Counted from the first letter of the stretch, positions 27,438-42,480 are shown. The stretch: 64,000 bases of DNA from IMGVR_UViG_3300029286_000009:62001-126000, one strand, 5' to 3'. Notes: generated by a model from the sequence alone, not told the origin. Made by a program: numbers and translations.

Positions 27438-27446
27438 AACTTTCTC

Positions 27447-28097: not shown

Positions 28098-28100
28098 TCA

Positions 28101-28550
28101 CTACACCCCGTCACTCACTACGTCAATATGGTCGTTGATTCCTAGTTCAGTGAGCAACTTTTTTAGATTGTGAAACCCTTTCTTTAATTCTTCTGGGTCT
28201 TCCAAGACCACAATACCATCAGCTGTTAAGTAAAAACCAGGATAACCTATGCACATATAGAATAAATCGTAAGGTGGGCATTCAAGATAAACTCCCTCAG
28301 GCAAACAGGTCCCCAGTGCACCAAGAATCCCACTAAGCTCCCGCAGGATATAGCTCTCGGGGTCTTTCAAAAAGTTTTCCTTATTTGCTCTCCCGTAGTT
28401 TCTGTTGTATCTATCTAGTAGTTCTTCAGCGGGGCAAGATTTAACCAAATGTTTAAAAATAGACTCTGCTCGATCTCGGTGTAGTGAAACCCCAACAGCA
28501 ATAAACGATGTTGAACTTGAATTTGTTATGAATGTGTGGCAGTAGAACAT
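28101..28550 (-). CDS. TNSSS-motif family protein 4
   Basis: MFYCHTFITNSSSTSFIAVG. Confidence 0.8.
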   Translation of the reverse strand: MFYCHTFITNSSSTSFIAVGVSLHRDRAESIFKHLVKSCPAEELLDRYNRNYGRANKENFLKDPESYILRELSGILGALGTCLPEGVYLECPPYDLFYMCIGYPGFYLTADGIVVLEDPEELKKGFHNLKKLLTELGINDHIDVVSDGV

Positions 28551-29062
28551 TATAATCCATACCCCTCAACCCACCATTTCGCAGAGCCTTTTGGTAGTTC
28601 AAACATATCACAGAATTCATCTATATATTTTTGTACCTCTTCTGGACTCATTTCGTAAGGGTCAAATCCTTCTGGTTCCCAATCACACGATCTACACAGG
28701 ACATAGAAGATCATGTAATAATCATCCGGATCATGCCGATCTAAGTCGCAAGTAGTAATTTTAACAGGTGTTTTAACATATGTCCTTTCTATACCGTTAT
28801 CATTCCATCCAATTCTACTCTCAGGATGTTTCTTTTCGTACTCTTTTTGGTATAGCCACATAATAAACTCTCTAAGGTCATTCAAATCGTTGAGTTGCTC
28901 TTTTGCCCAGCTATGACTGGCTTTGTAGGTATCCTTGTGTTGTTCGTAGAGTAGACGTATTCGGTCGTAAATTCCATCCAACTCTGGTTGGCGGTATAGA
29001 TTACCAAAACATACAAAAGCAGTTGTTGAACTATTAGTGATGTATTTAGAACGAATAAACAT
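28550..29062 (-). CDS. TNSSS-motif family protein 5
   Basis: MFIRSKYITNSSTTAFVCFG. Confidence 0.8.
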   Translation of the reverse strand: MFIRSKYITNSSTTAFVCFGNLYRQPELDGIYDRIRLLYEQHKDTYKASHSWAKEQLNDLNDLREFIMWLYQKEYEKKHPESRIGWNDNGIERTYVKTPVKITTCDLDRHDPDDYYMIFYVLCRSCDWEPEGFDPYEMSPEEVQKYIDEFCDMFELPKGSAKWWVEGYGL

Positions 29063-29289
29063 CAGTCTATCTTTTTAACCTCGAATGCCCAATCCTGATT
29101 CCACGCATCATCTTTAGCAGTTTCCATATCTTTGTTACCGATGAACTCGGCATAGTCGGGGTATGCTGCAACAAAAGCATGCTTCCAGTGTGCTGAACCT
29201 ATTTCAACAATTTTAATTTGAAGGTCGTTGTCAAAAAAGTTAATAAATGCAACAGCAAATTTGTTCATGATTCTCTCCAAGTAAACCAA
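29062..29289 (-). CDS. hypothetical protein
   Basis: Coupled small ORF. Confidence 0.5.
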   Translation of the reverse strand: MVYLERIMNKFAVAFINFFDNDLQIKIVEIGSAHWKHAFVAAYPDYAEFIGNKDMETAKDDAWNQDWAFEVKKID

Positions 29290-29645
29290 CTTGGTTTTTG
29301 TGGTGCAATTCCAAGTTTTTTACACGCTGCTTCTATAATGTCGTCCCACCCAGGCATTACTGTTGGGATTACATATGAATTATACCCGTAGGGGATTATA
29401 AATTGAGAGTGTTTAATATACATAATAGCAGTCTCCTCATCCCCAGAAAGGTATACAGGACACTTATCCCATGACAAGTTGCTTTTATCGTGATAAAAGT
29501 CTTCCCAATACAACGTGTCCCCGAATTCATCTACTAGGGGTTCGCTGTTCTCGTCCAGAGGGGAGACAGAGGGTAATTGTATTCCATAGGCAATAAGAGA
29601 TGTTGAAGAACTATTGGTAATAAATTTTGCACGATGGTAGGTCAT
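29265..29645 (-). CDS. TNSSS-motif family protein 6
   Basis: MTYHRAKFITNSSSTSLIAYG; ATGA overlap with the upstream gene. Confidence 0.8.
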   Translation of the reverse strand: MTYHRAKFITNSSSTSLIAYGIQLPSVSPLDENSEPLVDEFGDTLYWEDFYHDKSNLSWDKCPVYLSGDEETAIMYIKHSQFIIPYGYNSYVIPTVMPGWDDIIEAACKKLGIAPQKPSWFTWRES

Positions 29646-30001
29646 GAAGGCCCCCTTGTAAAGAACCACCCAGGGGATAGTCCGTCTAGGTTAATATTTA
29701 GTTCCTTAGCAAACTTGCGTAGAGCAATTTTTGATTCAGGCGTAACTCTATAAGAAATGCTATCCAGATGTAATGTGTAATTGCCACAGTTTTCAGTGTT
29801 TTCATAGCTGCGATCAACGTATAGAAGAATATTACCAGTATGGTCAGGGGTACCCCTGACGCCACTGTTGCCCTCATATAACAAATCGTAGAGGTCATCA
29901 GTTTTCTCTTTGACGAAAGGGGGCATATTAGGTACAATATAGCCCCACGCTATGAACGAAGTTGAACTTGAGTTCGTTACGTATGCTTTCCTTGTAAACA
30001 C
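29642..30001 (-). CDS. TNSSS-motif family protein 7
   Basis: GTG start with GGAG RBS; (M)FTRKAYVTNSSSTSFIAWG. Confidence 0.8.
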   Translation of the reverse strand: MFTRKAYVTNSSSTSFIAWGYIVPNMPPFVKEKTDDLYDLLYEGNSGVRGTPDHTGNILLYVDRSYENTENCGNYTLHLDSISYRVTPESKIALRKFAKELNINLDGLSPGWFFTRGPS

Positions 30002-30002
30002 T

Positions 30003-30422
30003 CTAACGCTCCACATTAATAGCAATAGACCACTCGGGACACACATAATGCGGTATGTCATTCGCATCACAAAATCTTCTCAGTTGTTTAGCCATACCTA
30101 GTTCTTGTTCTCTTGTATAACCCATCAATTCCCGCAACTTTGACATAGGAAGAGGCATTACTCCGCCCTCCCACAAGCTTAGATATGAGTCTTGGTGGTA
30201 TATGATGGTGCGTTCGGAATCCCACATAGGATGTACAGCTATGGCGGGGTAACTTTTGTGGGCTATTTCTCCCAGCTTTTCTCCAGCTTTGTAGCTTAAC
30301 TCAGTTTCAAACCCGTAGAAAATAAAACTGGTGGAAGAAGAGTTAGTTATGAATGCCCGTCTAATAAAGTATTTATTAGCACTGGAATGAGTAGTGCCCA
30401 GAGTCTTCGTTACCGTATTCAA
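30003..30422 (-). CDS. TNSSS-motif family protein 8 (N-terminally extended)
   Basis: TTG start preceded by AAGGAGG; ...KYFIRRAFITNSSSTSFIFYG. Confidence 0.75.
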   Translation of the reverse strand: MNTVTKTLGTTHSSANKYFIRRAFITNSSSTSFIFYGFETELSYKAGEKLGEIAHKSYPAIAVHPMWDSERTIIYHQDSYLSLWEGGVMPLPMSKLRELMGYTREQELGMAKQLRRFCDANDIPHYVCPEWSIAINVER

Positions 30423-30732
30423 ATTCGTCCTCCTTAAAATGTCCTAGGTATTCTATACAATAGAAAACCGCGTATCCTTTAAGTAATTTATCTGTTATGA
30501 CTGCCATTGCTTTGTTGTCCAGATACCTGTCAAGGGGGTCAGTTTCAACCACTAGTGGCATCTCGCAATGGGGGCAACGAAAACCTTCGCCACCTTTGTA
30601 CTGAGTCATCTCGTCCTCGTCAGGATATCTGCTAGGGTCTCTCTCCCACACAATCATACAGGATGAAGATGAATTTGTGACATACTTAGGTCGGTAGTAT
30701 ATTATGTATTTAAGTTGCATGCAATTCTCCAT
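30376..30732 (-). CDS. TNSSS-motif family protein 9 (with CPHC)
   Basis: YYRPKYVTNSSSSCMIVW. Confidence 0.75.
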   Translation of the reverse strand: MENCMQLKYIIYYRPKYVTNSSSSCMIVWERDPSRYPDEDEMTQYKGGEGFRCPHCEMPLVVETDPLDRYLDNKAMAVITDKLLKGYAVFYCIEYLGHFKEDEFEYGNEDSGHYSFQC

Positions 30733-31133
30733 CCTGGATCGGGGTTGTCAAAACGGTCGGGAGTTATACCATATTTGTGGCAGAATTCTATTATTTGAAG
30801 AGCCCACAGTCTTTTCGTAGAACTACATTTTCTCATATGCGTAAGCGGAAGTGCCTGTATACCACTTGTTGGTAAATAGTATCTTGATGCAGCAGCATAA
30901 ACAGCCCCTTCGATGTAGCCACCCTCCATCAGCATTACACTTATTGGTCCTTTTATATTTTCAGACCAATCAAATACAGCATTGTACACTTGCTGCTCAT
31001 CCATTAGCCCGATTTTTTCAGGTAGAATAATAGCTTGAGACATGGTGGCAAAGGAGTCATCAGAGAAGGTTATTCCAAAGAAGAGAAAGCTAGTTGATGA
31101 CGAATTCGTTATAAACGATCTTCTAACAAACAT
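30702..31133 (-). CDS. TNSSS-motif family protein 10
   Basis: MFVRRSFITNSSSTSFLFFG. Confidence 0.8.
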   Translation of the reverse strand: MFVRRSFITNSSSTSFLFFGITFSDDSFATMSQAIILPEKIGLMDEQQVYNAVFDWSENIKGPISVMLMEGGYIEGAVYAAASRYYLPTSGIQALPLTHMRKCSSTKRLWALQIIEFCHKYGITPDRFDNPDPGWRIACNLNT

Positions 31134-31245
31134 GCTGTTGTTGTCCTTTTTCTAGTCACTTACCTGTATAGAAATGCTTTGAGTGCGTAGTTGCCTATTA
31201 CGCTGGCTTAAAGCACTCATTTTAAACTCCTTTATCGCACCTTAG

Positions 31246-31476
31246 TTAATCGTTCCACGCGATTTCTTCGTCAGCTTTTCTCTTTTCGTATGAGTCAATT
31301 GTTTTACACAATTTGAAAGCAGCTGATTTTAGCTCGGACAGGTCCGCTTCGTTCACATCCACCCATTGATTCTCAAGGTAGGAGGACGCATCCTTTATGG
31401 CACCAGCTACATCTGAGAGCAAAAACGCAGTGGAACTCGAGTTGGTTACATACTTCGTTCGGATATACCGGTTCAT
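31246..31476 (-). CDS. TNSSS-motif family protein 11 (helical body)
   Basis: MNRYIRTKYVTNSSSTAFLL followed by a helical-looking body. Confidence 0.75.
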   Translation of the reverse strand: MNRYIRTKYVTNSSSTAFLLSDVAGAIKDASSYLENQWVDVNEADLSELKSAAFKLCKTIDSYEKRKADEEIAWND

Positions 31477-31484
31477 ACAAATTC

Positions 31485-31775
31485 CTACGGCCACAGAGGT
31501 TCAACACCATTTTTTGCAGCTATATCCAGTAACGTTTGACATGCATTTGCGTAGTGGGCGTGGCTTTCTTGTAACTGCTTGAGAGTTCTGAGTTTGTTTG
31601 GAAGACTGATACCACTACCAATTGAGAGGCGCACATTGAGGGTTAAAGGTTTATTTTCATACGCAGTTAACAGCCCGTCTATTAAACAGCTAAGAGTTTC
31701 TTTAGACACTTCCATTTCTTTTCCTTTGGCTTCCCAAGACTTAGAAGAACCACAGTGGGGGCATATTAATTTCAT
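31485..31775 (-). CDS. hypothetical protein with N-terminal CPHC
   Basis: ORF in operon. Confidence 0.5.
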   Translation of the reverse strand: MKLICPHCGSSKSWEAKGKEMEVSKETLSCLIDGLLTAYENKPLTLNVRLSIGSGISLPNKLRTLKQLQESHAHYANACQTLLDIAAKNGVEPLWP

Positions 31776-32002
31776 GGATAGATCACCAACGCTTTTTCAA
31801 TTTTATGTTCTTTATAGTGTTCGGGATGTAAGTCCATGCAGTCTGTATCAACAGGTTCCATATCAGTTTTATCGAAGAGGCAGACTTCCATTGACCACAA
31901 GGGAGCATAGCTATTTCCTTCCGGGTCTTTAGACACATAGATAGCCATATCGTCAGGTATTTTTTGCACTAATTTCTTTAAGTCCTTTCCGAGGAGTGTC
32001 AT
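31772..32002 (-). CDS. hypothetical phage protein
   Basis: SKDPEGNSY motif. Confidence 0.55.
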   Translation of the reverse strand: MTLLGKDLKKLVQKIPDDMAIYVSKDPEGNSYAPLWSMEVCLFDKTDMEPVDTDCMDLHPEHYKEHKIEKALVIYP

Positions 32003-32040
32003 GATATTTCCTTAGCAATTACGTTGAGTGTTTTTGGTAT

Positions 32041-32061
32041 GGGGAGCTATGAGAGCTCCCC
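32041..32061. terminator. hairpin with the same stem as the 26141 terminator
   Basis: GGGGAGCT-ATGAG-AGCTCCCC in an intergenic region. Confidence 0.5.
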
Positions 32062-32075
32062 TATTGCGTAAAGGT

Positions 32076-32444
32076 TTACATCTCGTTAACAAGCTTAGTC
32101 AACTCATCTACAGACATATCTCGCAAAGCTGCATCCTGCTTTTCTGCAATCACACCCAACAATTTCTGCTTGCGTTCTGACTTTGCTGCGACGTCTCGCC
32201 GGTCCTTCTGCTCCTGCAAGCGGATTCCCACGATGTGTTTCACGAGGGATATCTTAAGGTCGAGGATCTCGTCTTCTTGGCTCTTTATTTCGAGTAGGCT
32301 TTCTTCTTTCTGTGTCTTGATCTGTGCATTCAGTTCCTTGAAGATCGCATCAAGTGCCTTGAGGGACAAATCCCACAAGTCTTCTACTGAACACAGCCCT
32401 TTGTGGTTGAAACGTAACTTCAAACGTGTAGCTTTTTCGAACAT
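32076..32444 (-). CDS. phage coiled-coil hypothetical protein
   Basis: MFEKATRLKLRF..KG..SVEDLWDL followed by a long coiled coil. Confidence 0.7.
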   Translation of the reverse strand: MFEKATRLKLRFNHKGLCSVEDLWDLSLKALDAIFKELNAQIKTQKEESLLEIKSQEDEILDLKISLVKHIVGIRLQEQKDRRDVAAKSERKQKLLGVIAEKQDAALRDMSVDELTKLVNEM

Positions 32445-32462
32445 AGTGATACTCCTTTTGTG

Positions 32463-34505
32463 TTAAAATACGACCTTTACGGTTCGTGTTATATGTCCCC
32501 CCAACTTGCAGACTACTGAGTTTCGTTTGGTCGTGCTAAACCCCAATCCCGATAGCTGGTTTGCGGAAGGTGCGACATGCATTTTACCACCCAGGGCCTC
32601 GAATACCTGTCTGTGCGGCATAAGATCTTCCCGCAAAAACTCGTTGAAGAATCCGTTAGGCGATGTGTCATTAACACAGTCTTTCAGGAGAAAGAAACAG
32701 TGCCGATGCCCGATTCCTGTTTGTGCATCCCAGTAGTTCGGGGAGAACATGCAAACAGAAACTGGTTGGAACTGATTAGTGTTAAGATTCCATATTTCTT
32801 TTGACGAAAGAGAAGAAGGTAAAGATTGGACGAAGTGAATACCCTTTTTCTTGTCAAAAGCTACTTTAGCTACAATAACTCGCTCATCCTGTCGGACTTC
32901 TTTATTATACTCATATGAGTAAACTTGTCCATCGTACTCAATTTCTGCTCTGAATCCGCCTCTTCCCCCGCGGTGTGTGTAGTTGTGAACATAAAAGTCA
33001 TACACACCTTCTTGCATTCTGTCTGAGGAGGTCCATGTGATGTTTTCTACCGCAACTTGGTCCCGGTTAGGGTGGATGATGTCTACGTCTAGCATACCAG
33101 TTGATGAGTGCTTACGCCCTTTGTTATGAAACCAAATGTGGGTCCCATTAGGTTCTTTGCAGTGTGCATCCAAGTCATTCAGATCCTTTCCGTCTTCGTT
33201 CCACTGTAGTGAAAATCTGAGCACCCCTTCGACGTTGCCTCCAGCTGCCTTCACCCGCTCTTTCATGCTGTCAGTGATGTTTCCGTTGTACGCCCATGAG
33301 AAACCGTTATTCCATTTGAAAAGAGTTTTGCTGTTTTTGTTCTGAGGAGCAATCACAGACACTAGATCTGAACTATGGCGGTTTTCCAGAAACACCTCAA
33401 TACCAGTAGTCCTGGGCAGTATCTGCGAAAGAAAGTGTTCAATTGGAACTTCTTCCACTCTATCAAACTGCTTAGGACTAGCGGCTACTTGCTGTTCCAG
33501 CTCTGCAAATATATTACTGCCCATTCGTTTCAGTGCATCTCTGTTAGCGAAAAGGATATTGTTAATCGTAATATCCTCGAGAGTAGCAAATCTCCGTTCC
33601 AACGAATCGAGTAGTCCCAACTCCGCTAGAGTAACTTGTGCCTGTTCAATCATTTTCTTCGTGAAGATCGCCTTAGGGCGTTTATAGTTCGTAGGTGCCA
33701 CGATGGACTCATACTTTCTTACAGCACCAGTTACATCCATTCCTGTTGTGATATCACTCAGAAGAACACCAACAGAATGGTTTCTTATCTTGCCTATAGC
33801 TCCACCAACTTCAACTGACTTACACCAGCAGTAGCAATCTTGTGCATTACTTGGCAAACTATGGTATGTGTTGTGCAAGGACAAGAACTTTGTTAAAGGA
33901 CCTTGCCATTCCTCTCCCCTGTAAAGAGAGTTCTGGGAGATAAGATCAAGAACAGTTTCAATAGCGTCCTTCGATATTTCGTCTAAAGAACGTTTGAACA
34001 CATTCTTTACATCTCGAAACTCCCCCATAAGAGATGCTTCCGATTTAGTTGAGCAAGTGACAAATTGTTTTGGCAGAGTAATCTGGAAATGATCCCACTT
34101 GCAGACACTATTGTTTGTGTGTGAATCATAATTGTGATCTGTCCCGAAGCTGGCAACCTTAGTCGCGAAAACGTCCTTGATAGCACCAGTCTTTACATAT
34201 GCGGACAACGCTTTGACGACTGGTCCATAGGTTGTATCTTCAGTTTCAAAATCCCACACAGTGATGACTTTGCTATTGGAGTCAATAACCGCAACATTTC
34301 CGAACGCACGAATGAACTGCTTGCAACAATTACAGTCGTGTTCCCGTCGCTCTCGAAAAACTTCATTTGTGCCAGGAGGAAAACTGTTGAGGTATATCTC
34401 CCATAATTCATTTTTGTCGATATCTGTTGTGAAGAGTGTTGTATGTTCTTTTAGCAGTGCTGAGACGTGCAACTGCATCAATTTTCTGAATTGCGTGAAT
34501 TCCAT
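32463..34505 (-). CDS. large phage protein with YfaP/DUF2135-like C-terminal domain
   Basis: HDCNCCKQF N-terminus; LRFSLQWN...DLDAHC.EP...LDVD...VENITW. Confidence 0.65.
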   Translation of the reverse strand: MEFTQFRKLMQLHVSALLKEHTTLFTTDIDKNELWEIYLNSFPPGTNEVFRERREHDCNCCKQFIRAFGNVAVIDSNSKVITVWDFETEDTTYGPVVKALSAYVKTGAIKDVFATKVASFGTDHNYDSHTNNSVCKWDHFQITLPKQFVTCSTKSEASLMGEFRDVKNVFKRSLDEISKDAIETVLDLISQNSLYRGEEWQGPLTKFLSLHNTYHSLPSNAQDCYCWCKSVEVGGAIGKIRNHSVGVLLSDITTGMDVTGAVRKYESIVAPTNYKRPKAIFTKKMIEQAQVTLAELGLLDSLERRFATLEDITINNILFANRDALKRMGSNIFAELEQQVAASPKQFDRVEEVPIEHFLSQILPRTTGIEVFLENRHSSDLVSVIAPQNKNSKTLFKWNNGFSWAYNGNITDSMKERVKAAGGNVEGVLRFSLQWNEDGKDLNDLDAHCKEPNGTHIWFHNKGRKHSSTGMLDVDIIHPNRDQVAVENITWTSSDRMQEGVYDFYVHNYTHRGGRGGFRAEIEYDGQVYSYEYNKEVRQDERVIVAKVAFDKKKGIHFVQSLPSSLSSKEIWNLNTNQFQPVSVCMFSPNYWDAQTGIGHRHCFFLLKDCVNDTSPNGFFNEFLREDLMPHRQVFEALGGKMHVAPSANQLSGLGFSTTKRNSVVCKLGGHITRTVKVVF

Positions 34506-34519
34506 GGTAGTCCCTTTCT

Positions 34520-34789
34520 TTAGCCTTCCAGTTCGTTCACTTCGTAATCGTCTATGTATACTTCCGGCTTAAACACTAGTCCGCATCTCGGGCATCTAGT
34601 TGTATCTGGTTTGTCATTGTCACAGTAGATTCCATAAAGTTCTGGGTCAACTCCGTATGTACGTTTGATATAATTGTAGGGGTGCTCGGGGTGGTTCGAG
34701 TCCAGGCAGTCTCTGTTGTAAAGCATTCCTCCGGATTTCCACCACACAGGTATATCTATTTCTAGGGGTGGCACTTTGGTAATAGTCAT
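34520..34789 (-). CDS. hypothetical protein
   Basis: ORF in operon, CPRCG. Confidence 0.5.
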   Translation of the reverse strand: MTITKVPPLEIDIPVWWKSGGMLYNRDCLDSNHPEHPYNYIKRTYGVDPELYGIYCDNDKPDTTRCPRCGLVFKPEVYIDDYEVNELEG

Positions 34790-35055
34790 GGTGACAAACC
34801 CCCAGTGTTTCTCTTGAAGAGTAGTTTAACATAATCCTCTACACATAGTTGCTTGTGTTTATCGTAACCTTCAACAGCTGCTTGTATCTCTGCCGCTAGT
34901 TCATACAATTGGGGAAGCATATCTTGCCCTTCTCTATCCTCAAAATAGGCAGCACTAAGCAGGAGTTGGTGGGCGTTTTGTAGGTCGGCAATTGCTTCGT
35001 GAATCAAGTGCATACTCGAACTTGAGTTTGTTACGTATCTTGCTCGTGCGAACAT
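34786..35055 (-). CDS. TNSSS-motif family protein 12 (helical body)
   Basis: MFARARYVTNSSSSMHLI. Confidence 0.78.
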   Translation of the reverse strand: MFARARYVTNSSSSMHLIHEAIADLQNAHQLLLSAAYFEDREGQDMLPQLYELAAEIQAAVEGYDKHKQLCVEDYVKLLFKRNTGGLSP

Positions 35056-35057
35056 TG

Positions 35058-35444
35058 CTATCCCTCATATCCTGTGTACCAGCCCAACCATGTGGGCTTC
35101 TGGTTTTCTACCCCTAAGACTCTGCAGGCGTCCTTAATTGTTTTATCCCAGTTTTCCTTAACACCAAGCTTAAGTTCAACACACCCATACTCAATATCTT
35201 GCCTGGATTTACTGACTACCATTACAGCGGCGTCCGACTCAGCCGCAATCCAAAATTCTACTTTAATGTCGCCGTAAGGTATTCCAGACAACTCCTCATA
35301 ATAATCTTCCCAGTATATCCTGTTACCGTTTTCATCACGTAGTTGTTCCTCGGAATCATCTGTAGGATATCCTGAGAGGGTTATCCCATAAGCAATAAAA
35401 GCAGTTGAGGAACTATTTGTTATAAATTTACGTCGTGTATACAT
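35058..35444 (-). CDS. TNSSS-motif family protein 13
   Basis: MYTRRKFITNSSSTAFIAYG; close paralog of 29265-29645. Confidence 0.8.
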   Translation of the reverse strand: MYTRRKFITNSSSTAFIAYGITLSGYPTDDSEEQLRDENGNRIYWEDYYEELSGIPYGDIKVEFWIAAESDAAVMVVSKSRQDIEYGCVELKLGVKENWDKTIKDACRVLGVENQKPTWLGWYTGYEG

Positions 35445-35451
35445 AATTGCC

Positions 35452-35787
35452 TCATCTTTGTTCTAATTCGGGAGCTAATATTTCATATTGGTTGAGGTCT
35501 TCTTGGTAATCAATAAACCAACCAAATTTTTCCAGCATAATGTTTATTTCTTGCTCCGCTTCTTGTACGCTCTCTTTCATTGTATAGAGTGTGTTCACCA
35601 GAGTTTGGAGTTCCCCGAGGATCTGTTCGTTGGGTTCCTCGTCAGACTGTATACATTCTCTGAATTTACACAGGAGACTGGTGGCTGCGATAGGTGCTGC
35701 CCACAAGTATGTTTGCAACTTATGTAGTTCTTCAAGTATAATTTTTGTTGTTTCGTACCCAAAGCACGCTTTCTCAGATGTCATCAT
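35452..35787 (-). CDS. hypothetical coiled-coil protein
   Basis: ORF in operon. Confidence 0.5.
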   Translation of the reverse strand: MMTSEKACFGYETTKIILEELHKLQTYLWAAPIAATSLLCKFRECIQSDEEPNEQILGELQTLVNTLYTMKESVQEAEQEINIMLEKFGWFIDYQEDLNQYEILAPELEQR

Positions 35788-36040
35788 TGTCCTGTATCAT
35801 TCCTTTCTTCTTGAGCCACTCGATGGTTTCTGCTTCAGTGAAACCTACAGTAAATCCGCATTCAGCACAAGCATAATCTAACACTTTGGCTACATCGGTT
35901 TCAAGGATACATCCTTCGCCTAAGCGGTCAAAGTCATCGTAAGTTTCTACACCTATTAGTTCTACTGCTTTACGTTCTAGTCGGTAGACACACAGCATGT
36001 TGTACCCACATCCTGGGCACTCAAAGTTAATTATTCTCAC
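35774..36040 (-). CDS. zinc-ribbon paralog A
   Basis: FECPGCG...YACAECG...EWLKKKGMI. Confidence 0.65.
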   Translation of the reverse strand: MRIINFECPGCGYNMLCVYRLERKAVELIGVETYDDFDRLGEGCILETDVAKVLDYACAECGFTVGFTEAETIEWLKKKGMIQDNDDI

Positions 36041-36115
36041 CTTAAATCTCCTATAGGTTCTAAGATGGTGACGATGATTTCAGGACTGCGTCTCCTGATA
36101 TACTGATCGTCAATC

Positions 36116-36496
36116 TCAATTAAGATTTTCAATTCGTTCTCCAACAACCTCTACTTTATCGGGCCAAAGGATGCCAGTGCACGGAGCATAATCTGGGTTC
36201 TTGTTCTGCTTATCAAGCTCTTCAATAAGTTTGTCTCTTGCCTCCGCTCGGGTGTTAAACGACCTTGAACATGTTACGATATGCCCATATTGGTCGTATA
36301 TCTCGAAACAGAAACCAGAAAAATCGTTTGCCATGATAAGTTTAGTGTTTCGTATCTGTTGTATCTCTGGAACACGTGGGGATTCTTTCCAACTACACTC
36401 ACGACAGCCACGCTGAAGCTTTCTGCCGGATCCCCATTGGTCGTAGATATTGGTAGATTCGCAGCTAGGACATTGGGTTAGTTCTTTTATTCCCAT
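36116..36496 (-). CDS. zinc-ribbon hypothetical protein
   Basis: CPSC...CRECSW. Confidence 0.55.
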   Translation of the reverse strand: MGIKELTQCPSCESTNIYDQWGSGRKLQRGCRECSWKESPRVPEIQQIRNTKLIMANDFSGFCFEIYDQYGHIVTCSRSFNTRAEARDKLIEELDKQNKNPDYAPCTGILWPDKVEVVGERIENLN

Positions 36497-36783
36497 TGTT
36501 ACCTCATAAATCCTCTTTCCTTACTGATCGGGGAAAAACTATTAGTTTTGGACTTAAATAAGCAATTCTTTTGAAGTTTTATTTTTGCTCCTCATCATCC
36601 CATACTATCTTTCTATATCTAATTATCTCATCATCTACAGCATGAATAGGCTCATAGGATACGCGTCGCCTGTTTATTTTCGTGTCATCTATAGCGTAAT
36701 CGAACTCTTCATAAATCTTATTGGGGTTCATATTTTCTACCTTCCAACCTTTTCAAAAGTTTTTTTAGTTTTGGTCAGCGTCT

Positions 36784-37041
36784 TCAACTCTTTTCCAACA
36801 TGTCATTGGTTTTCAACCATTCTATTGCTGTTATTTCAGAGTTACCAATACCATATCCGCATAACTCACATTCGTAGCCCAACACATCAACAACATCTGT
36901 TTCTAGAACGTCTCCTACTACCAACCAGTCGCTGTTGTTGTGTGTGTCTAAGTCTGTGATGTGTATCGTCTCGTAAACTGTTTGGACTGAGCAGAGGACT
37001 TCACCCCTACACCTTGGGCATACAAATTTAATTCTGCTCAT
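36784..37041 (-). CDS. zinc-ribbon paralog B
   Basis: FVCPRC...YECELCG...EWLKTNDML. Confidence 0.65.
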   Translation of the reverse strand: MSRIKFVCPRCRGEVLCSVQTVYETIHITDLDTHNNSDWLVVGDVLETDVVDVLGYECELCGYGIGNSEITAIEWLKTNDMLEKS

Positions 37042-37372
37042 TGTTCACCTTAACTAATTCAAGCTGCTTCTGTTCCCATTCTGGTGTATACCATTGTAAA
37101 GCCATACCTCTTTCCATTAACCATTTATAGAGTTCTGCTTCCCCGTACGCAAACTGGGTACAACAATTTGCACATTTATACAGTGGCATAGCATGCGTGT
37201 TTCTATTTTCTGGACCTCCGCCGTCATATGATACGCCAAAATCTTTTTCATCTAATGTTGATATTCTCTCGACGATTTGTGTTTGGACAATCGTTCTTTC
37301 TTCATGTAAAATGGTCTTGCCGCATTCAGGACATACAAAATAAATATCTCTTGGGTAATTATTTTTGGTCAT
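37028..37372 (-). CDS. zinc-ribbon paralog C
   Basis: FVCPECG...YKCANC...KWLMERGM. Confidence 0.65.
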   Translation of the reverse strand: MTKNNYPRDIYFVCPECGKTILHEERTIVQTQIVERISTLDEKDFGVSYDGGGPENRNTHAMPLYKCANCCTQFAYGEAELYKWLMERGMALQWYTPEWEQKQLELVKVNNEQN

Positions 37373-37631
37373 TCTCTATCATTCCTTGCTCTTCCAGCCA
37401 TTCATAAAGTTCTGTTTTAGTTGTGGCTATTGGTTCTAAACAGCAACCACACATATATTCTTTCAAGCCTTGCAGATCAATTATAGGTTCCTGATTTGGA
37501 CCTACTTCAAAATTTATATCTTCATCAATATCTTTTTCTACTGTGTCTATAGTGTATCGGACTTCGGCGTAAGAAACTTCTTCTAATATGTTCTCGCCAC
37601 AATGTGGACATTTGAATTCAATCAATGACAC
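37359..37631 (-). CDS. zinc-ribbon paralog D
   Basis: FKCPHCG...YMCGCC...EWLEEQGMI. Confidence 0.65.
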   Translation of the reverse strand: MSLIEFKCPHCGENILEEVSYAEVRYTIDTVEKDIDEDINFEVGPNQEPIIDLQGLKEYMCGCCLEPIATTKTELYEWLEEQGMIENDQK

Positions 37632-38175
37632 TTTTTATTCCTTGCTTAGCATAGTATTCAATAAGGTTTTGTATCCGGCTAGTCACCTCATCTATGTGCC
37701 AGAGTTGGAAATTGTTTGCATCAACGCCCGCGTCGAAAGAAAGCCCATATGGGTCTAACTTGTTGTGGCTATGCCCAAACAGGTGCCATGATCCATGGAA
37801 GGAGTTCTTCCAGGAACGATGTGCATAATGGCTCATCCATATGCCTGCTTGGTTAAAGCCAGTTAGCCATAGCACATCTTTAACCGCTTCCCAACCCATA
37901 TGGGTGGTAGGAGCTTTATCATGGTTGCCCAATATTAGGACCTTCCTACCTTTCAATCTAGCAAAAATTTGGCGGGGGTCTACAATAAGTGTGCTCGAGA
38001 AGAAAGCGAAGTCCCCCAGGTGATAAACTATATCTGAGGGACTTTCTATTCTCTTATTCCAATTCTCAATTATTGTTTCATCCATCTCATCTGCACAAGA
38101 GAATGGGCGGTTAGAGTGTCGTATTATGTTTGTATGCCCGAAGTGGGTGTCTGCGGTGAAAAAGATATTTGCCAT
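37618..38175 (-). CDS. calcineurin-like metallophosphoesterase
   Basis: DTHFGH, GDF, GNHD, GHSH. Confidence 0.9.
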   Translation of the reverse strand: MANIFFTADTHFGHTNIIRHSNRPFSCADEMDETIIENWNKRIESPSDIVYHLGDFAFFSSTLIVDPRQIFARLKGRKVLILGNHDKAPTTHMGWEAVKDVLWLTGFNQAGIWMSHYAHRSWKNSFHGSWHLFGHSHNKLDPYGLSFDAGVDANNFQLWHIDEVTSRIQNLIEYYAKQGIKSVID

Positions 38176-38178
38176 AAG

Positions 38179-38601
38179 TTACTCATAAGAGATGTAGAAC
38201 CAACCAGGTCCCACTAAGATGCATGCATTTCTTTCATTTAAGGCCGCTTGTAGTTCACGATACCAAGCAGAATAGGTTGCACCATCACGGGGTGCGTTCA
38301 CATGCCATGTCATATCAGTTACAGTTTTTGCTCTCCACTGGTCGTCTTCACGAATTAATTCTTGCGATAAGATGCGGGTGTTTCCGTCGATAGTATAATT
38401 GTAGCACTCTTCGAAGGAATCTGTGTGCCCCACAAAGAATAGCCCACCACCCCTACTCTCCTTGAACAGATTACCTTCAGTAGTGTTACACATAATTTCT
38501 AGTTTATCTAGCCCGTCATACGTAGCTTTGTCTACTAATACTCCCCACGCGACAAACCCCGTTGAGGAGGAGTTAGTTATAAATGCGTATCTCTTGAACA
38601 T
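38179..38601 (-). CDS. TNSSS-motif family protein 14
   Basis: MFKRYAFITNSSSTGFVAWG...GPGWFYI. Confidence 0.8.
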   Translation of the reverse strand: MFKRYAFITNSSSTGFVAWGVLVDKATYDGLDKLEIMCNTTEGNLFKESRGGGLFFVGHTDSFEECYNYTIDGNTRILSQELIREDDQWRAKTVTDMTWHVNAPRDGATYSAWYRELQAALNERNACILVGPGWFYISYE

Positions 38602-38609
38602 TGTTTTTC

Positions 38610-38942
38610 CTAAGGTATAAGTTTTCCATACCATTGCGGAGAGTCAGAAGGACAATTGGCAGTCAAGATCGTAAAGAAGTCGAAAAAGTGTGCTGCCCAA
38701 TCGTGATATTCATCAGCACCGATCCGCATATCCTGCAAAGCAACATTACCAGCATCAGGTCCTACCTCAAATACGGATGCTCCAACATATACAATATCCC
38801 CATCAACTTGGATAGGAAACTGGTGATCCTCTGCACTATGATACTGCTCGCGTGTACGCCGGACGTATTTTCTGTATTCCTCAATGCTGGGTTTAAGATC
38901 AGTAGCAATTTTATAGCCATACATAAAACGAAAAGATGCCAT
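38610..38942 (-). CDS. hypothetical protein, possible tag-less relative of the TNSSS family
   Basis: MASFRFMYGY...SPQWYG. Confidence 0.5.
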   Translation of the reverse strand: MASFRFMYGYKIATDLKPSIEEYRKYVRRTREQYHSAEDHQFPIQVDGDIVYVGASVFEVGPDAGNVALQDMRIGADEYHDWAAHFFDFFTILTANCPSDSPQWYGKLIP

Positions 38943-38947
38943 TATTA

Positions 38948-39379
38948 TTACCCCGCGAATATAGCATGTTCTTTTACGTGCTTCCCGTCGAAACACCATT
39001 GCCACATATATCCATCTTCTCCTGTCATGTTGATATAGGACCCATTTCTCACAAAACGAGCGATTATTTCGAATAGCAATTCTTCCTGTCCTATTTTCTC
39101 CCCTGTAAATTCTAAACTCACAATGTTACCTGCGACATCCAGGATAGGTTTCCATCTGAACTCTTCGAGTACTTCTTCGATTGCCTGTGCCTGTTCTAAT
39201 ACAGAATTACTGGTCCAAGAAAACCAGTATTTTACTTTCTCACCGTTTTGCCAACCCCCACCGTCCCCCAGAGTTTTCACTTTTGCTAGCATTTCTAATC
39301 TAAATGCGGATAAAGCTGCCTGTTTATCATGGCAGCCCATAAAAAAACTGATTTCACGTTGAGTCATCGAGTATCCCAT
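38948..39379 (-). CDS. hypothetical phage protein
   Basis: MGYSMTQ...FTGEKIG...GEDG..WQW. Confidence 0.55.
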   Translation of the reverse strand: MGYSMTQREISFFMGCHDKQAALSAFRLEMLAKVKTLGDGGGWQNGEKVKYWFSWTSNSVLEQAQAIEEVLEEFRWKPILDVAGNIVSLEFTGEKIGQEELLFEIIARFVRNGSYINMTGEDGYMWQWCFDGKHVKEHAIFAG

Positions 39380-39588
39380 TATTGCTTCTCCTTGCGTGGT
39401 TCTTGTGCGGTTGGGGCATTGGGCACCTGAGTATTGGATATCTCTTTCGTGATAGGGCACTCGGGGCACACCCACGACTGAATGTCTTTCTTTAGACCGT
39501 CAAACATTGCACAACTACTTAGCATGAGTGTGGCTACTATTATACATAGCAGTGTCTTCATTATTCTTAGCCTTATACGACGAGCCAA
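39379..39588 (-). CDS. small putative lipoprotein
   Basis: MKTLLCIIVATLMLSSC lipobox. Confidence 0.5.
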   Translation of the reverse strand: MARRIRLRIMKTLLCIIVATLMLSSCAMFDGLKKDIQSWVCPECPITKEISNTQVPNAPTAQEPRKEKQ

Positions 39589-40058
39589 TCAAAAATGGTC
39601 GGGTCGTGATGAAATATTTGTTGAAAAGGTTGAGCTAATAATTCTTTCAGGTGATTAATTCTGTAGGGGCTTTGCCCCTCTGCCAGAGCTTTTTCGAGTG
39701 CAAACTCTAGCAGTCTTTTCCATCGATCTTTGTGCTGCAAGATGGTATAATAGATGTGAGAATCTTTGGTTCTATGTCTAAGCCACCCCATATATCCGCG
39801 TGAGGCTAGCTCTACAAACAATGCTTCGGCGTCAAGTTTCTCCACAGAAGTTATCTCAAGCACTTTATATGATTCGGTGTCGGGAGGCTCTACATTTGAA
39901 AGCCTAAATCTTAATCCAAAGAGTGGGATATCCACGAAGCCCACACTAGGCATACTGATTAGTGGGGCAAGAAGAAAACCCTGCAACTCATGTTTGAGCT
40001 GCAGGGCTAGTTTGTTAACTTGCTCTGCTTCTTTGTTACGAACTGTGTGTGTTGGCAT
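39573..40058 (-). CDS. hypothetical protein
   Basis: ORF in operon. Confidence 0.5.
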   Translation of the reverse strand: MPTHTVRNKEAEQVNKLALQLKHELQGFLLAPLISMPSVGFVDIPLFGLRFRLSNVEPPDTESYKVLEITSVEKLDAEALFVELASRGYMGWLRHRTKDSHIYYTILQHKDRWKRLLEFALEKALAEGQSPYRINHLKELLAQPFQQIFHHDPTIFDWLVV

Positions 40059-40260
40059 GTCTTAACCGGTAAGCTTCTTTTACGGTAGCATCAGATTTGT
40101 TCCCTATCTTACCTTCTTTACGCAATCGAGTCATTTTACGCTCAATACTCGCTTGTGAGTGTCTCGGGAATAGTTTGACTAACTCTTGGACGGGCAAATC
40201 ATAGCTCTTAATCAATTCTATTGTCTCCGATAAAGTCCAAGCCATTCTGTGTCCTGCCAT
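40036..40260 (-). CDS. small HTH-like protein
   Basis: WTLSETIEL...FPRHSQASIERKMTRL. Confidence 0.5.
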   Translation of the reverse strand: MAGHRMAWTLSETIELIKSYDLPVQELVKLFPRHSQASIERKMTRLRKEGKIGNKSDATVKEAYRLRHANTHSS

Positions 40261-40852
40261 ATGTCCTCCTATTATGCTGGAATGTCACTGAAAGTAGGGG
40301 CACACTGTTTATAACCAACCCAGCGGTTGTTCAAGAATGTTATTACGTGCCGTTACTATCTTCCGCGGGGGCAGTAGAGGAAGCAGGCAGGCTATTAATC
40401 ATGTCTTTAACGCGTGACCCTACTTTGACAAATCGATCCACGGACCGCACTACAGACACGAGTAATGCCTCATCTAGCTCTCGAAGAGTATTAAACATAT
40501 CTACTTGCTCAAGTCTCCACTCCCATGTAATAGAGGCACGATAATTGTCATTAATATTTTTAATGCTACCGTCAGCCAGAGTGATTGTGCTTGGTCTACA
40601 CTTTGCTATACTAATGTCTCTGATAAGACCCTCATCTATTAGTTGAAGAATGACAGGAGTCATCCCACTCTCCTTTTTATTTACGATAGGCGTTCAATCC
40701 GAGCCATAAGTTGTCTTCGTCCGGAACCAGTTTGTTACCTCCTGAAGAAGCCACAATAATTGTCTTTCCAGTTTTGGAAGGACCAAATGTTTTCTTAGTA
40801 TCAATTTTGATGTGCAAAACTTTGTCGTCGTCCATTGTCATTTCAACATTTT

Positions 40853-41614
40853 TCATGCTCTGATTTCTCCATTGGTGTCAAGATCAATGATTGCGTTATT
40901 TACCAGTTCAACCAGTCCCGCATGCCGCGGGCCAGTTGAAATTAGAGAGTTTCTTCCCCACAACTGTGTGATAGCACCATGGAATCCGTATAGGCTATCA
41001 TCATAATGTGCTAGGTTTTCATCATTCTTCTTCTCAAAGAATAGCTGATAAAACTTTGCGAAGCTACCTTCTGGGAGCACGTTGTTTTCCACAGCACGAA
41101 AGGTCAGTGCCTGTGCGCTTCGTTTTGTTATCTTGTAACTTTGCAGACCCATATGCCATTGTTCAAAGGTTTCCAGTTTATCTGCCACTGCTCGTATCGC
41201 TTTTTGTGCAGATTCCTTGAGGATATTGATAGTAAGTCTTCCGTAGTGCACGTGGTAAGAAATGAACTCTCCACTGAACAAGAGGTTGTCACAAACAGTC
41301 ACGCGTCGCCCCGCAGTGATTCCGGCTGCCAGAGACTTATCTATACTGTTACGGCACCCTATCATGCGTGTGCCCACAGCGTCACCAACATCTAAGGTGA
41401 GCACCCCGAACATCTTACCCCCATTCTTAGATAGGGAGAATTCTTGGTGAATAACCCGGTAACCATTATCTGCTATTGCGTCGGTGAGCAAATCCACGAA
41501 TTCGCCGTGCCCTATAGTCCCCCAAGTACGAGTACGTTCGGGTGTAGGTATAGCCTTTACTGCGTTGTAATCCGTCCTATTTGTGTCAATATGCGCGATG
41601 AGTCCTGCCATCAT
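40853..41614 (-). CDS. DUF932-like phage protein
   Basis: PTPERTRTW..IGH, RNSIDKS, RVTVCDNLLF, H, SLYGFHGAIT. Confidence 0.65.
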   Translation of the reverse strand: MMAGLIAHIDTNRTDYNAVKAIPTPERTRTWGTIGHGEFVDLLTDAIADNGYRVIHQEFSLSKNGGKMFGVLTLDVGDAVGTRMIGCRNSIDKSLAAGITAGRRVTVCDNLLFSGEFISYHVHYGRLTINILKESAQKAIRAVADKLETFEQWHMGLQSYKITKRSAQALTFRAVENNVLPEGSFAKFYQLFFEKKNDENLAHYDDSLYGFHGAITQLWGRNSLISTGPRHAGLVELVNNAIIDLDTNGEIRA

Positions 41615-42077
41615 TTACTCCCTGTTGCTGCACGCTTGGACGCCTTTAGCGGGTTAACTTTGCCTTGTTGCTCAACTTTTTCAGTGAACGCAAAGGGACA
41701 CTTTGATTGGTACCATTTCCTTCCAGGGTAGGCATATGTAGTGCAATAATCACCATCTATGCGGGGGCATGGGATGAGCACCGGCTTCTTTACTCTAGCT
41801 TCTCCGGTCGCTATGAACTCCACTCCTGCAGCCTTGCACTCCTCAACAATGGGTTGTTTGTCCGCGGGAGTTAGGAAATGCCAGGCTTTAGTTATTTTCT
41901 GTGCCATTTTTTTCTCCTACCTTTTCGATAGTTAAGAGGTTTCGGGGTGACATAATCAGTATGGGTAACTCGTTGTCTTTCTCGAGCTCAATACTAAGGG
42001 AATCACCTTTCTTTGTCATGCTGACGAGTCTACCCGCATAATCTGTTTGCCATCCCGACACGTGTACTCTGATTCTC

Positions 42078-42398
42078 TCACCTTTTCGGTACTTTGCCAT
42101 CTGTACATCCTGTTATGATTGTGTATGAATGCTCGTCTGTACGTGCTCGGAGTGGGTATCTTGTCGTAGTCTCAACTACTTTGACAGGGTAATCGAATTT
42201 GAAGTCGCCAACTTTATTGGTAACGATTTCCTCGGTAGTAGAAATTGGGGTGATCCAGAATGTTACCCATATGAATATGGTTATAAATATGACTATCCCA
42301 GTTATAGTCACGAACTGCCAAAGGGGGTGTTCCTCCACAAATGCCCATATAAGGGGGGCTATTAACCAAATAGCAAGCATGAGACTGATTATATCCAT
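42078..42398 (-). CDS. membrane protein (paralog of 43164-43496)
   Basis: Two TM segments followed by KFDYPVKV....YP.R. Confidence 0.55.
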   Translation of the reverse strand: MDIISLMLAIWLIAPLIWAFVEEHPLWQFVTITGIVIFITIFIWVTFWITPISTTEEIVTNKVGDFKFDYPVKVVETTTRYPLRARTDEHSYTIITGCTDGKVPKR

Positions 42399-42480
42399 TT
42401 ATCCTCTCTTTATTACTTCTCGATTTTCGTGATCCAAGGGGGTTTAATAGGTAAGGCATCACAGGATGAAAGGAACGTTC

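Follow-up and report, generated by a model that had tools for sequence, protein, structure and literature searches.

A conserved N-terminal block on unrelated phage and clostridial proteins, encoded beside a radical SAM enzyme, is a candidate modification handle

A 17-residue block centred on F-V-T-N-S-S-S begins a large set of phage and bacterial proteins and is almost always encoded beside one family of radical SAM enzymes. The block is discrete, is conserved at the protein level and lies at a fixed distance from the start codon. Since it stands next to one such enzyme in hundreds of phages and Clostridia, its most likely role is that of the enzyme's recognition and modification site; on genomic evidence and predictions, we consider it probable that the block is a portable N-terminal handle, recognised and modified by the neighbouring SPASM-type enzyme. 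Enzyme and handle together would constitute a system that nobody has described, and we found no record of it in Pfam, NCBIfam, PHROG, PADLOC, PDB or the literature.

An array of small proteins with a common N-terminus

The window analysed here is a stretch of 64,000 nt from a 260-kb phage genome. A six-frame scan identified 15 minus-strand ORFs within 26339-44061 that carry [TS][NH]SS[STG], always near the ORF start, and 11 of them form a near-contiguous array (26339-31476). A sixteenth copy lies beyond the window, at 160111-160887 of the genome. The TNSSS motif described in the initial annotation is real: a stricter family pattern matches the window 15 times, compared with a mean of 0.43 and a maximum of 3 in 200 shuffled versions. 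The members, the enzyme and the neighbouring genes discussed below are as follows (coordinates in the window; strand).

23381-25486: Lon-like protease
26339-26776, minus: motif protein, 145 aa (M-T-F-T-R...F-V-T-N-S-S-S, Thr at residue 10); body in a small cluster with metagenomic relatives
26773-27087, minus: motif protein, 104 aa; body of a large class whose relatives end in E-E-G-W-Y-D-G
27093-27437, minus: motif protein, about 114 aa, P-x-W (KPTWIF); ACG at the canonical Met position, no canonical start codon
28101-28550, minus: motif protein, 149 aa; body class of 26773 (BLAST E 3e-8, tag removed)
28550-29062, minus: motif protein, 170 aa, T-N-S-S-T variant; body linked to the P-x-W class (HHalign 91%)
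29265-29645, minus: motif protein, 126 aa, common P-x-W body (KPSWFT); E 1e-17 to 35058
29642-30001, minus: motif protein, 119 aa, GTG start, P-x-W body (SPGWFF)
30003-30422, minus: motif protein, 139 aa, TTG start with AAGGAGG ribosome-binding site, 25-residue extension before the motif, P-x-W body (CPEWSI)
30376-30720, minus: motif protein, 114 aa; CPHC-containing body, unlinked to other members
30702-31133, minus: motif protein, 143 aa, P-x-W body (DPGWRI); many metagenomic relatives
31246-31476, minus: motif protein, 76 aa; short body, no link to any cluster
34786-35055, minus: motif protein, 89 aa; short body, no link to any cluster
35058-35444, minus: motif protein, 128 aa, reference member; predicted body beta-alpha-beta-beta-alpha-beta with residues 1-11 unplaced (AlphaFold)
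37618-38175, minus: metallophosphoesterase, 185 aa, directly downstream of member 38179
38179-38601, minus: motif protein, 140 aa, P-x-W (GPGWFY); body without profile link
38610-38942, minus: untagged ORF, 110 aa, probably a P-x-W body homologue (HHalign 59-70%)
43510-44055, minus: motif protein, 181 aa, T-N-S-S-G variant; acidic, unlinked body; starts 6 nt past the radical SAM gene end
44062-45126, minus: radical SAM enzyme, 354 aa, SPASM-type Cys-rich C-terminus; conserved partner gene of the motif proteins
45123-45833, minus: ClpP-family protease, 236 aa; 4-nt overlap with the radical SAM start; not a conserved part of the system elsewhere

Nine members have an ATG or GTG exactly 8 codons ahead of the motif Thr, two have their start 9 codons ahead and one 10 codons ahead; longer N-terminal extensions occur in 30003 (25 residues) and 30376 (14-18 residues). 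Ser11-13 are written with a mixture of TCN and AGY codons and Arg4 with a mixture of CGN and AGR, which argues that the block is kept at the protein level and not as a DNA repeat.

Searched against 1.84 billion representatives, a profile of the 16 paralogues retrieved 349 proteins at E <= 1e-3; nearly all are 90-170 aa long, with the motif beginning at residue 1. Across the 490 distinct motif proteins of phages and bacteria, the block has the consensus M-[KF]-[IV]-R-x-[DGK]-F-[VI]-T-N-S-S-S-[ST]-S-[FY]-[IV], Thr or Ser is residue 9 in 96%, and conservation stops at about residue 17. Their lengths range from 61 to 882 aa (median 136).

The block is carried by many different bodies

With the 18 N-terminal residues removed, only two pairs of window members are still similar by BLAST. 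The more sensitive profile-profile comparison unites seven of them (29265, 35058, 30702, 30003, 27093, 29642 and 28550) in one family and joins 26773, 28101 and 26339 weakly (25-32%), while 31246, 34786, 38179, 43510 and 30376 show no body links to other window members. The initial annotation had described a C-terminal P-x-W signature in most members; it is exact in the seven listed there, so that "most" was slightly generous for 7 of 15. Its CPHC body on 30376 and acidic body on 43510 both read as described. Relatives of member 28550 also have P-x-W-W. The short bodies of 31246 and 34786 were called helical there; an ESM Atlas model of 34786, at a low pLDDT of 0.57, lies structurally closest to helical hairpins.

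The same picture extends to the databases. The stripped bodies of the 490 unique motif proteins fall into 111 BLAST clusters, and HHalign profile-profile comparison without the N-terminus leaves most bodies unlinked (probability <10% for most cluster pairs). Long motif proteins of 400-880 aa (maximum 882 aa) contain BspA-type leucine-rich repeats (LRR_5, E 1e-237) or a BRCT domain (E 2e-10). The C-terminal tails of motif proteins have a mild common bias towards Cys, His and Gly.

Structure prediction for two members gave confident AlphaFold models (pLDDT 85.2 and 86.2) of different topology; the second, of a 124-aa Clostridia class, is mainly helical, with an order of elements unlike that of 35058. 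In both models the motif is left unplaced, and residues 1-10 fall below pLDDT 50; as modelled, the block is not packed into the body. The hydrophobic residues 14-24 of the 35058 model, right after the Ser run, form the first body strand. Only residues 1-13 act as a free appendage in this model; with the post-Ser residues contributing a core strand, handle and body are not entirely independent. By these predictions, the motif proteins are folded proteins and not short RiPP precursors.

A probable untagged homologue completes this evidence. The ORF at 38610-38942 begins with M-A-S-F-R-F-M-Y-G-Y directly after a triple stop, and its start aligns to S-F-I-A-W-G-Y, the strand behind the motif in tagged members. 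Its HHalign probability against the common-body profile is 59-70% (E 4e-5 to 9e-5); the alignment spans 59 columns, the S-P-x-W end among them. The ORF is probably a version of the commonest window body that lacks the tag (handle residues 1-13), as the initial annotation had supposed from its sequence. That tag and body are separable, also proposed there, is supported by four independent lines: BLAST with profile comparison, the 111 clusters, the two model topologies and this homologue. The bodies bearing the block are, as judged from their sequences and, where modelled, from their folds, unrelated in many cases.

A radical SAM enzyme is the constant neighbour

The enzyme at 44062-45126 belongs to the radical SAM superfamily (PF04055, 52.2 bits against a cut-off of 29.5, E 1e-13). 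It contains C59-x3-C63-x2-C66 with a Tyr directly behind, and all 35 relatives compared keep C59, C66 and Y67; the spacing of the three-Cys loop is longer in some relatives. Just about 50 residues stand ahead of this cluster motif. Towards the C-terminus, Cys 252, 274, 292 and 329 are conserved, and a C-x2-C...C-x2-C...C tail is present in the window copy and the Clostridia copies, with several phage copies truncated after C329. The SPASM model TIGR04085 scores 21.2 and 26.2 bits in two relatives, just below its cut-off of 27, and all curated NCBIfam maturase models stay far under their cut-offs. Matches in PDB include the cluster domains of anSME, BtrN and PqqE, and the sequence relation to anSME is confined to the C-terminal cluster domain (E 5e-4). 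The nearest solved relatives, SuiB, SkfB, PqqE and anSME, modify peptides or proteins. Scans with Pfam and NCBIfam found no RRE/PqqD-like leader-binding domain in the enzyme. Complex prediction of the enzyme with a motif member gave no usable answer (score 0.00).

We sampled the linkage in two ways, from the motif (21 IMG/VR loci) and from the enzyme (80 viral and 80 bacterial loci). In the enzyme-based sample, at least one motif ORF occurs on the same strand in 73 of the 80 viral loci and in 68 of the 80 bacterial ones; altogether 342 motif ORFs (248 viral, 94 bacterial) lie on the enzyme strand and 0 on the opposite strand. When bacterial enzymes are clustered at 70% identity, 28 of 30 clusters are paired with a motif protein; the two exceptions are L162, which does have a member with a GTG start, and L113, a fragment of 2.9 kb. 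The gap between the two genes has a median of 11 nt in bacteria; at viral loci the first member is often separated from the enzyme by other genes, with a median gap of 1.5 kb. Motif proteins are the sole recurrent neighbour family of the enzyme (67 of 80 loci), followed by an XRE-type regulator (17 of 80), and no recurring protease or transporter family, nor any third conserved gene, was found beside the pair in the 80 loci. Metallophosphoesterases are occasional neighbours (L006, L012, L109, L170).

Starting from the motif, a homologue of the window enzyme (E 1e-29 to 1e-51) lies immediately upstream, in the same orientation, at 11 of the 21 IMG/VR loci; on a twelfth contig the distance is about 20 kb. 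At three of the 21 loci, a second radical SAM type adjoins motif members. The gene neighbourhood therefore strongly supports the radical SAM link suggested initially. Linkage by itself would also fit a role of the motif proteins as partners, carriers or product binders.

Comparison with known systems

In its radical SAM core with a Cys-rich C-terminal extension, the enzyme resembles the SPASM peptide maturases SuiB/streptide, SkfB, PqqE/PqqA and MftC/MftA, of which SuiB, SkfB and PqqE are its best solved relatives. As in those systems, the enzyme adjoins genes with a conserved N-terminal sequence and a variable remainder, and one enzyme would serve several putative substrates; co-located genes sharing a recognition sequence, as expected of RiPP precursors, are present at the proportions of loci given above. 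Unlike in those systems, no RRE domain was found, either in the enzyme or as a separate partner, nor was a conserved leader protease or exporter found nearby. The putative precursors are confidently folded proteins of 61-882 aa instead of short peptides, and the target site probably lies within the 17-residue block at their extreme N-terminus, not in a core downstream of it.

The anaerobic sulfatase maturases anSME and AtsB offer a further parallel. These SPASM radical SAM enzymes act on whole proteins without an RRE domain, and anSME oxidises a Ser or Cys contained in a short linear motif, one enzyme serving many paralogous sulfatases. The motif here is F-V-T-N-S-S-S, in contrast to C/S-x-P/A-x-R in sulfatases, and the putative substrates are not sulfatases and have no common fold. 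Sulfatase maturation proper was rejected: the block consensus lacks Pro or Arg in those positions, and the members scanned have no Sulfatase family match.

The proposed logic, in which one enzyme serves many substrates encoded alongside it, their N-terminal recognition sequence conserved and the rest diversified, also recalls prochlorosin-type systems, where one lanthipeptide synthetase processes dozens of precursors that combine conserved leaders and hypervariable cores. There the enzyme is a LanM, the substrates are peptides and the longer leader is removed, unlike the radical SAM arrangement here. The capsid-targeting sequence of T4-type phages is similar in being an N-terminal sequence of about 10 residues on otherwise unrelated small phage proteins in variable arrays. 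The block differs in being linked to a radical SAM gene and not to head genes, and in occurring also in bacterial two-gene cassettes and being conserved across unrelated phages. Capsid targeting of this type was set aside, as no Glu is conserved at positions 1-26 of the 490 unique motif proteins to match the T4-type cleavage site, and the radical SAM gene is the sole conserved neighbour.

Alternative readings

Tight two-gene linkage equally fits a complex, in which the motif proteins would be accessory subunits, carriers or binders of the enzyme product and the handle an interaction peptide instead of a modification site. The lack of an RRE domain agrees with this, and a Ser-rich loop after a strand, typical of phosphate or ligand binding, could dock the ligand or the enzyme. 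We nevertheless consider it rather unlikely: up to 16 diversified paralogues per genome for a single enzyme are the pattern of substrates and not of a stoichiometric subunit, the unrelated bodies, LRR and BRCT proteins included, offer no common binding fold past the 17 residues, the motif is unplaced in both AlphaFold models, and the enzyme's nearest solved relatives act on peptides or proteins. Improbable, in our estimate, is a single ancient, fast-diverging fold of which the block would be an integral structural or catalytic element, its apparent portability being divergence past detection. In its favour, seven to nine window members belong to a single family marked by a C-terminal P-x-W strand, three further members are weakly linked to others, residues 14-24 are the first core strand of 35058, and the C-terminal tails share their mild compositional bias. 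Against this stand the mainly helical clostridial model, the long LRR_5 and BRCT members, the low HHalign values between most clusters, and the fact that both models place the best-conserved residues with the lowest confidence.

A sorting or turnover signal, with the radical SAM gene as an unrelated neighbour, appears very improbable to us. Such a signal could target capsids, as the roughly 10-residue N-terminal sequence that is all T4 internal proteins have in common does, or be an N-terminal degron for phage ClpP or Lon-like proteases. The window has both proteases; its ClpP gene overlaps the start of the radical SAM gene and has matches to PHROGs that bear the name head maturation protease. 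Yet ClpP relatives accompany the system at only about three of more than 180 loci (L006 and L119 among them), so that neither a Clp/Lon degron nor the Clp link of the initial annotation held up; the bacterial cassettes in 28 of 30 enzyme clusters do without protease or head genes. Moreover, the block is near letter-for-letter the same across very different phages and bacteria, which is not expected of a signal read by each phage's own scaffold. Serine runs are common as low-complexity sequence, and chance or an overlapping-frame artefact might be invoked; the excess over shuffles, the fixed position relative to start codons, the 349 database relatives and the complete strand bias near the enzyme gene refute such an origin, which we discount almost entirely.

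Proposed mechanism and implications

If the block is a modification handle, one enzyme (44062-45126 in the window) would serve many diversified bodies, of which this phage has 16. The enzyme would directly bind the exposed N-terminal strand and abstract a hydrogen inside the invariant T-N-S-S-S stretch; epimerisation, cross-linking or an oxidation of Ser like that carried out by anaerobic sulfatase maturases are possible outcomes, and the modification may activate or equip the variable bodies. The phage bodies resemble early, host-directed proteins in the course of diversification. All evidence for a modification is genomic and predicted, and its particular chemistry and biological role are guesses.

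More broadly, and tentatively, these observations may reflect an unrecognised protein-level maturation system, in which a radical SAM enzyme modifies a universal 17-residue handle that can be attached to any body. Phages would use it to equip arrays of fast-evolving, host-directed proteins, and Clostridia to equip LRR, BRCT and other proteins. If true, this would possibly be new chemistry, an oxidation or cross-linking within T-N-S-S-S, perhaps to the Cys-, His- or aromatic-rich C-terminal tails, and the handle could become a genetically encodable tag that brings radical SAM chemistry to folded proteins.

Motif proteins in the phage genome

A six-frame scan of the window placed the T-N-S-S-S motif in 15 ORFs of the minus strand, which span 26339 to 44061 and carry it near the ORF start each time; the family pattern is found 15 times, compared with 0.43 times on average in 200 shuffles, and chance is excluded as its origin. 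For nine of these members, the Thr is preceded by an ATG or GTG at a distance of exactly eight codons; three others carry one or two extra residues and two have longer extensions. The member at 27093–27437 (-) shows ACG at the canonical Met position, with GTT one codon upstream and GGAG 6–9 nt upstream; either a non-canonical start is used here or the start codon has been lost. A sixteenth motif protein is encoded ~55 kb from the array. Its block reads I-Y-Q-R-E-T-F-T-T-N-S-S-S-S, with an Ile codon at the expected Met position and the closest ATG 21 codons before the Thr. Since both TCN and AGY codons are used for the three invariant Ser residues and both CGN and AGR for the Arg, conservation acts on the protein and not on a DNA repeat.

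The virus record is a single contig of 259,732 bases, estimated to be 96% complete, of which the window comprises bases 62001–126000. A megablast search with 20 kb found no DNA-level relative among cultured phages. The plus-strand half of the window is given over to genes for replication and nucleotide metabolism (family A polymerase, NrdD/NrdG, NAD-dependent ligase, Lon-like protease), and the motif array is located in a long minus-strand block of small genes. The following features are referred to in the text (window coordinates unless stated otherwise).

3937–6592 (+): NrdD (anaerobic ribonucleotide reductase) adjoining NrdG (radical SAM activase)
23381–25486 (+): Lon-like ATP-dependent protease
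32463–34505 (-): 680-aa protein corresponding to PHROG 1735 end to end (E 1e-262, no known function)
35774–36040, 36784–37041, 37028–37372, 37359–37631 (all -): second paralogue family, four members
44062–45126 (-): radical SAM enzyme, 354 aa
45123–45833 (-): ClpP-family protease, Ser-His-Asp apparently intact by eye
49200–50057 (-): one phage protein combining PARP catalytic (E 3e-19) and PARP regulatory (E 2e-9) domains
Genome C1:160111–160887 = L001:4112–4888 (-): sixteenth motif protein, 258 aa

The NrdD/NrdG pair points to an anaerobic or facultative host, and NrdG is the only radical SAM gene of the genome besides the enzyme at 44062–45126. Two protease systems, one Lon-like and one of the ClpP family, are encoded by the phage. 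The PHROG 1735 protein sits in the middle of the motif-protein region. Also within this region lies the second paralogue family, whose proteins (85–114 aa) have two CxxC pairs and a common C-terminal E-x-x-x-W-L; Pfam gave nothing above threshold for them.

A conserved N-terminal block on hundreds of proteins

A profile built from the 16 paralogues returned 349 matches at E ≤ 1e-3 among 1.84 billion representative proteins, nearly all of them 90–170 aa long with the block starting at residue 1. Pooling the motif ORFs of all loci fetched from phage and bacterial collections yielded 490 distinct proteins, in 96% of which the Thr/Ser is residue 9. Their consensus is M-K-[IV]-R-x-D-F-V-T-N-S-S-S-S-S-[FY]-[IV], beyond which (residue 17) conservation collapses; positions 7–13 are set by the search expression, while positions 1–6, positions 14–17 and the distance to the start are not. 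The window copies represent a variant, M-F-x-R-x-x-F-[IV]-T-N-S-S-S-T-S-F. In the following, this N-terminal sequence is called the handle and the remainder of each protein the body.

Pfam, PHROG and NCBIfam contain no model for the motif proteins, with zero Pfam matches among 73 diverse members. Scans of members against these three collections and PADLOC gave nothing above noise, since the PADLOC matches of one member are due solely to its BRCT domain. Searching PDB sequences with the family profile produced nothing meaningful, and none of the 73 members matches a solved structure by sequence. A word-indexed protein search retrieved only the query itself, and the literature searched with motif strings and for radical SAM plus phage held nothing relevant. 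As far as searched, no family model, structure or paper describes the motif or its pairing with the enzyme.

Motif proteins are linked to one radical SAM family

Our main new result is the linkage of the motif proteins to one radical SAM family. In the window, the enzyme gene ends 6 nt before the start of member 43510–44055. Of 21 IMG/VR loci retrieved with residues 1–32 of the family, 11 carried a clear enzyme homologue (E 1e-29 to 1e-51) a short distance upstream of the array and on its strand, and a twelfth had one 20 kb away on the same contig. In three, a different radical SAM gene abuts a member; the remaining contigs are fragments (11–34% complete). Sampling from the enzyme side gave 298 relatives in IMG/VR and 296 in bacterial assemblies (one genome per species), the latter mostly from Lachnospiraceae, Oscillospiraceae and other Clostridia and including cultured isolates, and tblastn against cultured phages found three weak records only. 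From each collection we fetched 80 enzyme loci, and at least one motif ORF was present in 73 of the viral and 68 of the bacterial ones. These ORFs lay on the strand of the enzyme in 248 viral and 94 bacterial instances and never on the opposite strand. Phage arrays typically hold 2–12 members and bacterial loci usually one, at a median distance from the enzyme of 11 nt in bacteria (≤100 nt in 64 of 68). When all neighbours were clustered, motif proteins were the sole recurrent family (67/80 loci), followed by an XRE-type regulator (17/80).

Grouped at 70% identity, the bacterial enzymes form 30 clusters, of which 28 were paired with a motif ORF. As for the two exceptions, L162 does contain a member, which begins with GTG, and L113 is a fragment of 2.9 kb. 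In Schaedlerella arabinosiphila DSM 106076 (L117:7700–8014), the motif protein encoded upstream of the enzyme reaches a stop 26 residues from its start; this partner is truncated or a pseudogene and was missed by the pattern search, although the enzyme of this locus belongs to a paired cluster.

Three phage loci (L012:2301–3353, L023:10362–11438 and L024:15424–16473) carry, adjacent or close to motif proteins, a radical SAM gene of a second and different family (N-terminal L-L-T-R-R-C-N-x2-C-x-Y-C), with the main type also present on the contig of L012. One group of gut phage contigs of ~100 kb has an adenylosuccinate-synthetase-like gene (L044:6676–7923) directly upstream of the enzyme, and LemA-like and membrane-protein genes are found between the enzyme and the first motif protein.

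The enzyme itself combines a radical SAM domain (PF04055, E 1e-13) with a Cys-rich, possibly SPASM-type C-terminus. Curated NCBIfam radical SAM maturase models all scored far below their thresholds, PADLOC gave weak viperin-like core matches only, and no RRE domain was detectable. The closest solved structures by sequence are SuiB (E 8e-7), SkfB, PqqE, BtrN and anSME, which, with the exception of BtrN, modify peptides or proteins. Among relatives, the SAM-cluster cysteines are spaced C-x8-C-x6-C or C-x5-C-x3-C, compared to C-x3-C-x2-C, in L002:6591–7673, L006:6596–7675 and most Clostridia copies (alignments A6 and A7). This difference is probably why the copy in phage locus L002, a 360-aa gene directly upstream of the array and the true enzyme homologue there, has no precomputed Radical_SAM annotation. 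A metallophosphoesterase and a radical SAM gene beside the same array were considered as counterparts of the window genes and turned out to be superfamily-level relatives only.

Handle and body are separable

The initial annotation had proposed that tag and body are separable, and the wider family bears this out. With the first 18–20 residues removed, BLAST similarity remains for only two window pairs, 29265/35058 and 26773/28101 (members named by start position). Profile-profile comparison, using body clusters built from all loci, united 29265, 35058, 30702, 30003, 27093 and 29642 in one body family, to which 28550 is related at 91%. The bodies of 26773, 28101 and 26339 are weakly linked (25–32%), and those of 31246, 34786, 38179, 43510 and 30376 show no linkage (at most 7%). 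BLAST sorts the full set of 490 bodies into 111 clusters. In long bacterial members, the same 17 residues precede BspA-type LRR repeats (882 aa, E 1e-237) or a BRCT domain (408 aa, E 2e-10).

Two AlphaFold models built with family alignments also differ. Member 35058–35444 (mean pLDDT 85) is predicted to fold as strand, helix, two strands, helix, strand, and a 124-aa class common in Clostridia (mean pLDDT 86) is modelled as mainly helical. In both, residues 1–10, the most conserved part of the protein, have pLDDT below 50. As the first core strand in the model of 35058–35444 is made up of residues 14–24, which follow the Ser run immediately, the free appendage would comprise approximately residues 1–13. 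For this model, Foldseek against the PDB found nothing at E ≤ 1e-3, and an exhaustive structural aligner reached best Z values of 3.9 and, for the helical model, 4.1, both in the noise range; these searches of predicted structures yield no convincing neighbour, yet fold novelty does not follow.

The P-x-W signature, described earlier as a second element near the C-terminus, was recovered in exactly the seven members named, and it opens the final strand in the model of 35058–35444. An untagged version of the common body had been suggested at 38610–38942, which receives moderate support: this ORF starts directly after a triple stop, the beginning of its sequence aligns to the post-motif strand of tagged members, and its match to the common-body profile covers 59 columns, the S-P-x-W end among them, with a probability of 59–70% (E 4e-5 to 9e-5). 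A C-terminal aromatic signature common to all classes was rejected, as Trp is only mildly enriched (33% in the last 10 residues versus 16% internally). Counted once per body cluster in the 490 proteins, the last five residues are enriched relative to bodies in Cys (3.1x), His (2.7x) and Gly (2.1x), which may mark a second functional element or be noise.

A putative maturase with co-encoded substrates

Short peptides and a few dedicated proteins are the main known targets of tailoring by radical SAM/SPASM enzymes. We consider it fairly probable that the present system is, in kind, a radical SAM maturase with co-encoded substrates. The handle would then be the recognition element of the enzyme and would probably contain the modified residue, with Ser oxidation, epimerisation or a cross-link at F7, T9, N10 or the Ser run as candidate chemistry. 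The closest analogy is offered by the anaerobic sulfatase maturases, which read a short motif on whole proteins, as proposed here for the handle. In contrast to known radical SAM maturases, the partners are folded proteins of many folds with a 17-residue N-terminal handle, no RRE is found, and phage arrays are involved. That chemistry and use are new enough for a new class is possible, though less likely than not. In phages, the arrays are embedded among small genes of early type and resemble host-directed proteins undergoing diversification, and bacterial partners include LRR and BRCT proteins.

The motif proteins might instead be accessory or binding partners of the enzyme, which we regard as unlikely: a substrate role accounts better than a subunit role for a single enzyme being accompanied by as many as 16 diversified partners in a genome, for their unrelated bodies and for the exposure of the N-terminal peptide. 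A complex prediction of the enzyme with member 35058, SAM and 4Fe-4S scored 0.00 and speaks neither for nor against binding. A single hidden fold common to all members is very improbable given the two differing models and the LRR and BRCT fusions. Slightly less probable still is that the handle serves as a capsid-targeting signal or degron, a role to which the ClpP gene of the window, which overlaps the enzyme gene, might point; this ClpP gene is not conserved elsewhere. F-V-T-N followed by Ser resembles an intein C-terminal junction, a reading we rejected since no Hint or N-intein partner is conserved beside the motif genes.

In gut Clostridia and many uncultured phages, one enzyme family nearly always goes together with a very short N-terminal sequence borne by hundreds of unrelated folded proteins. 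Should the handle prove to be a modification site, it would define a new, widespread post-translational modification, supply a small candidate tag for directing enzyme chemistry to any chosen protein, and give the function-free arrays of phage 'dark matter' a common biochemical entry point.
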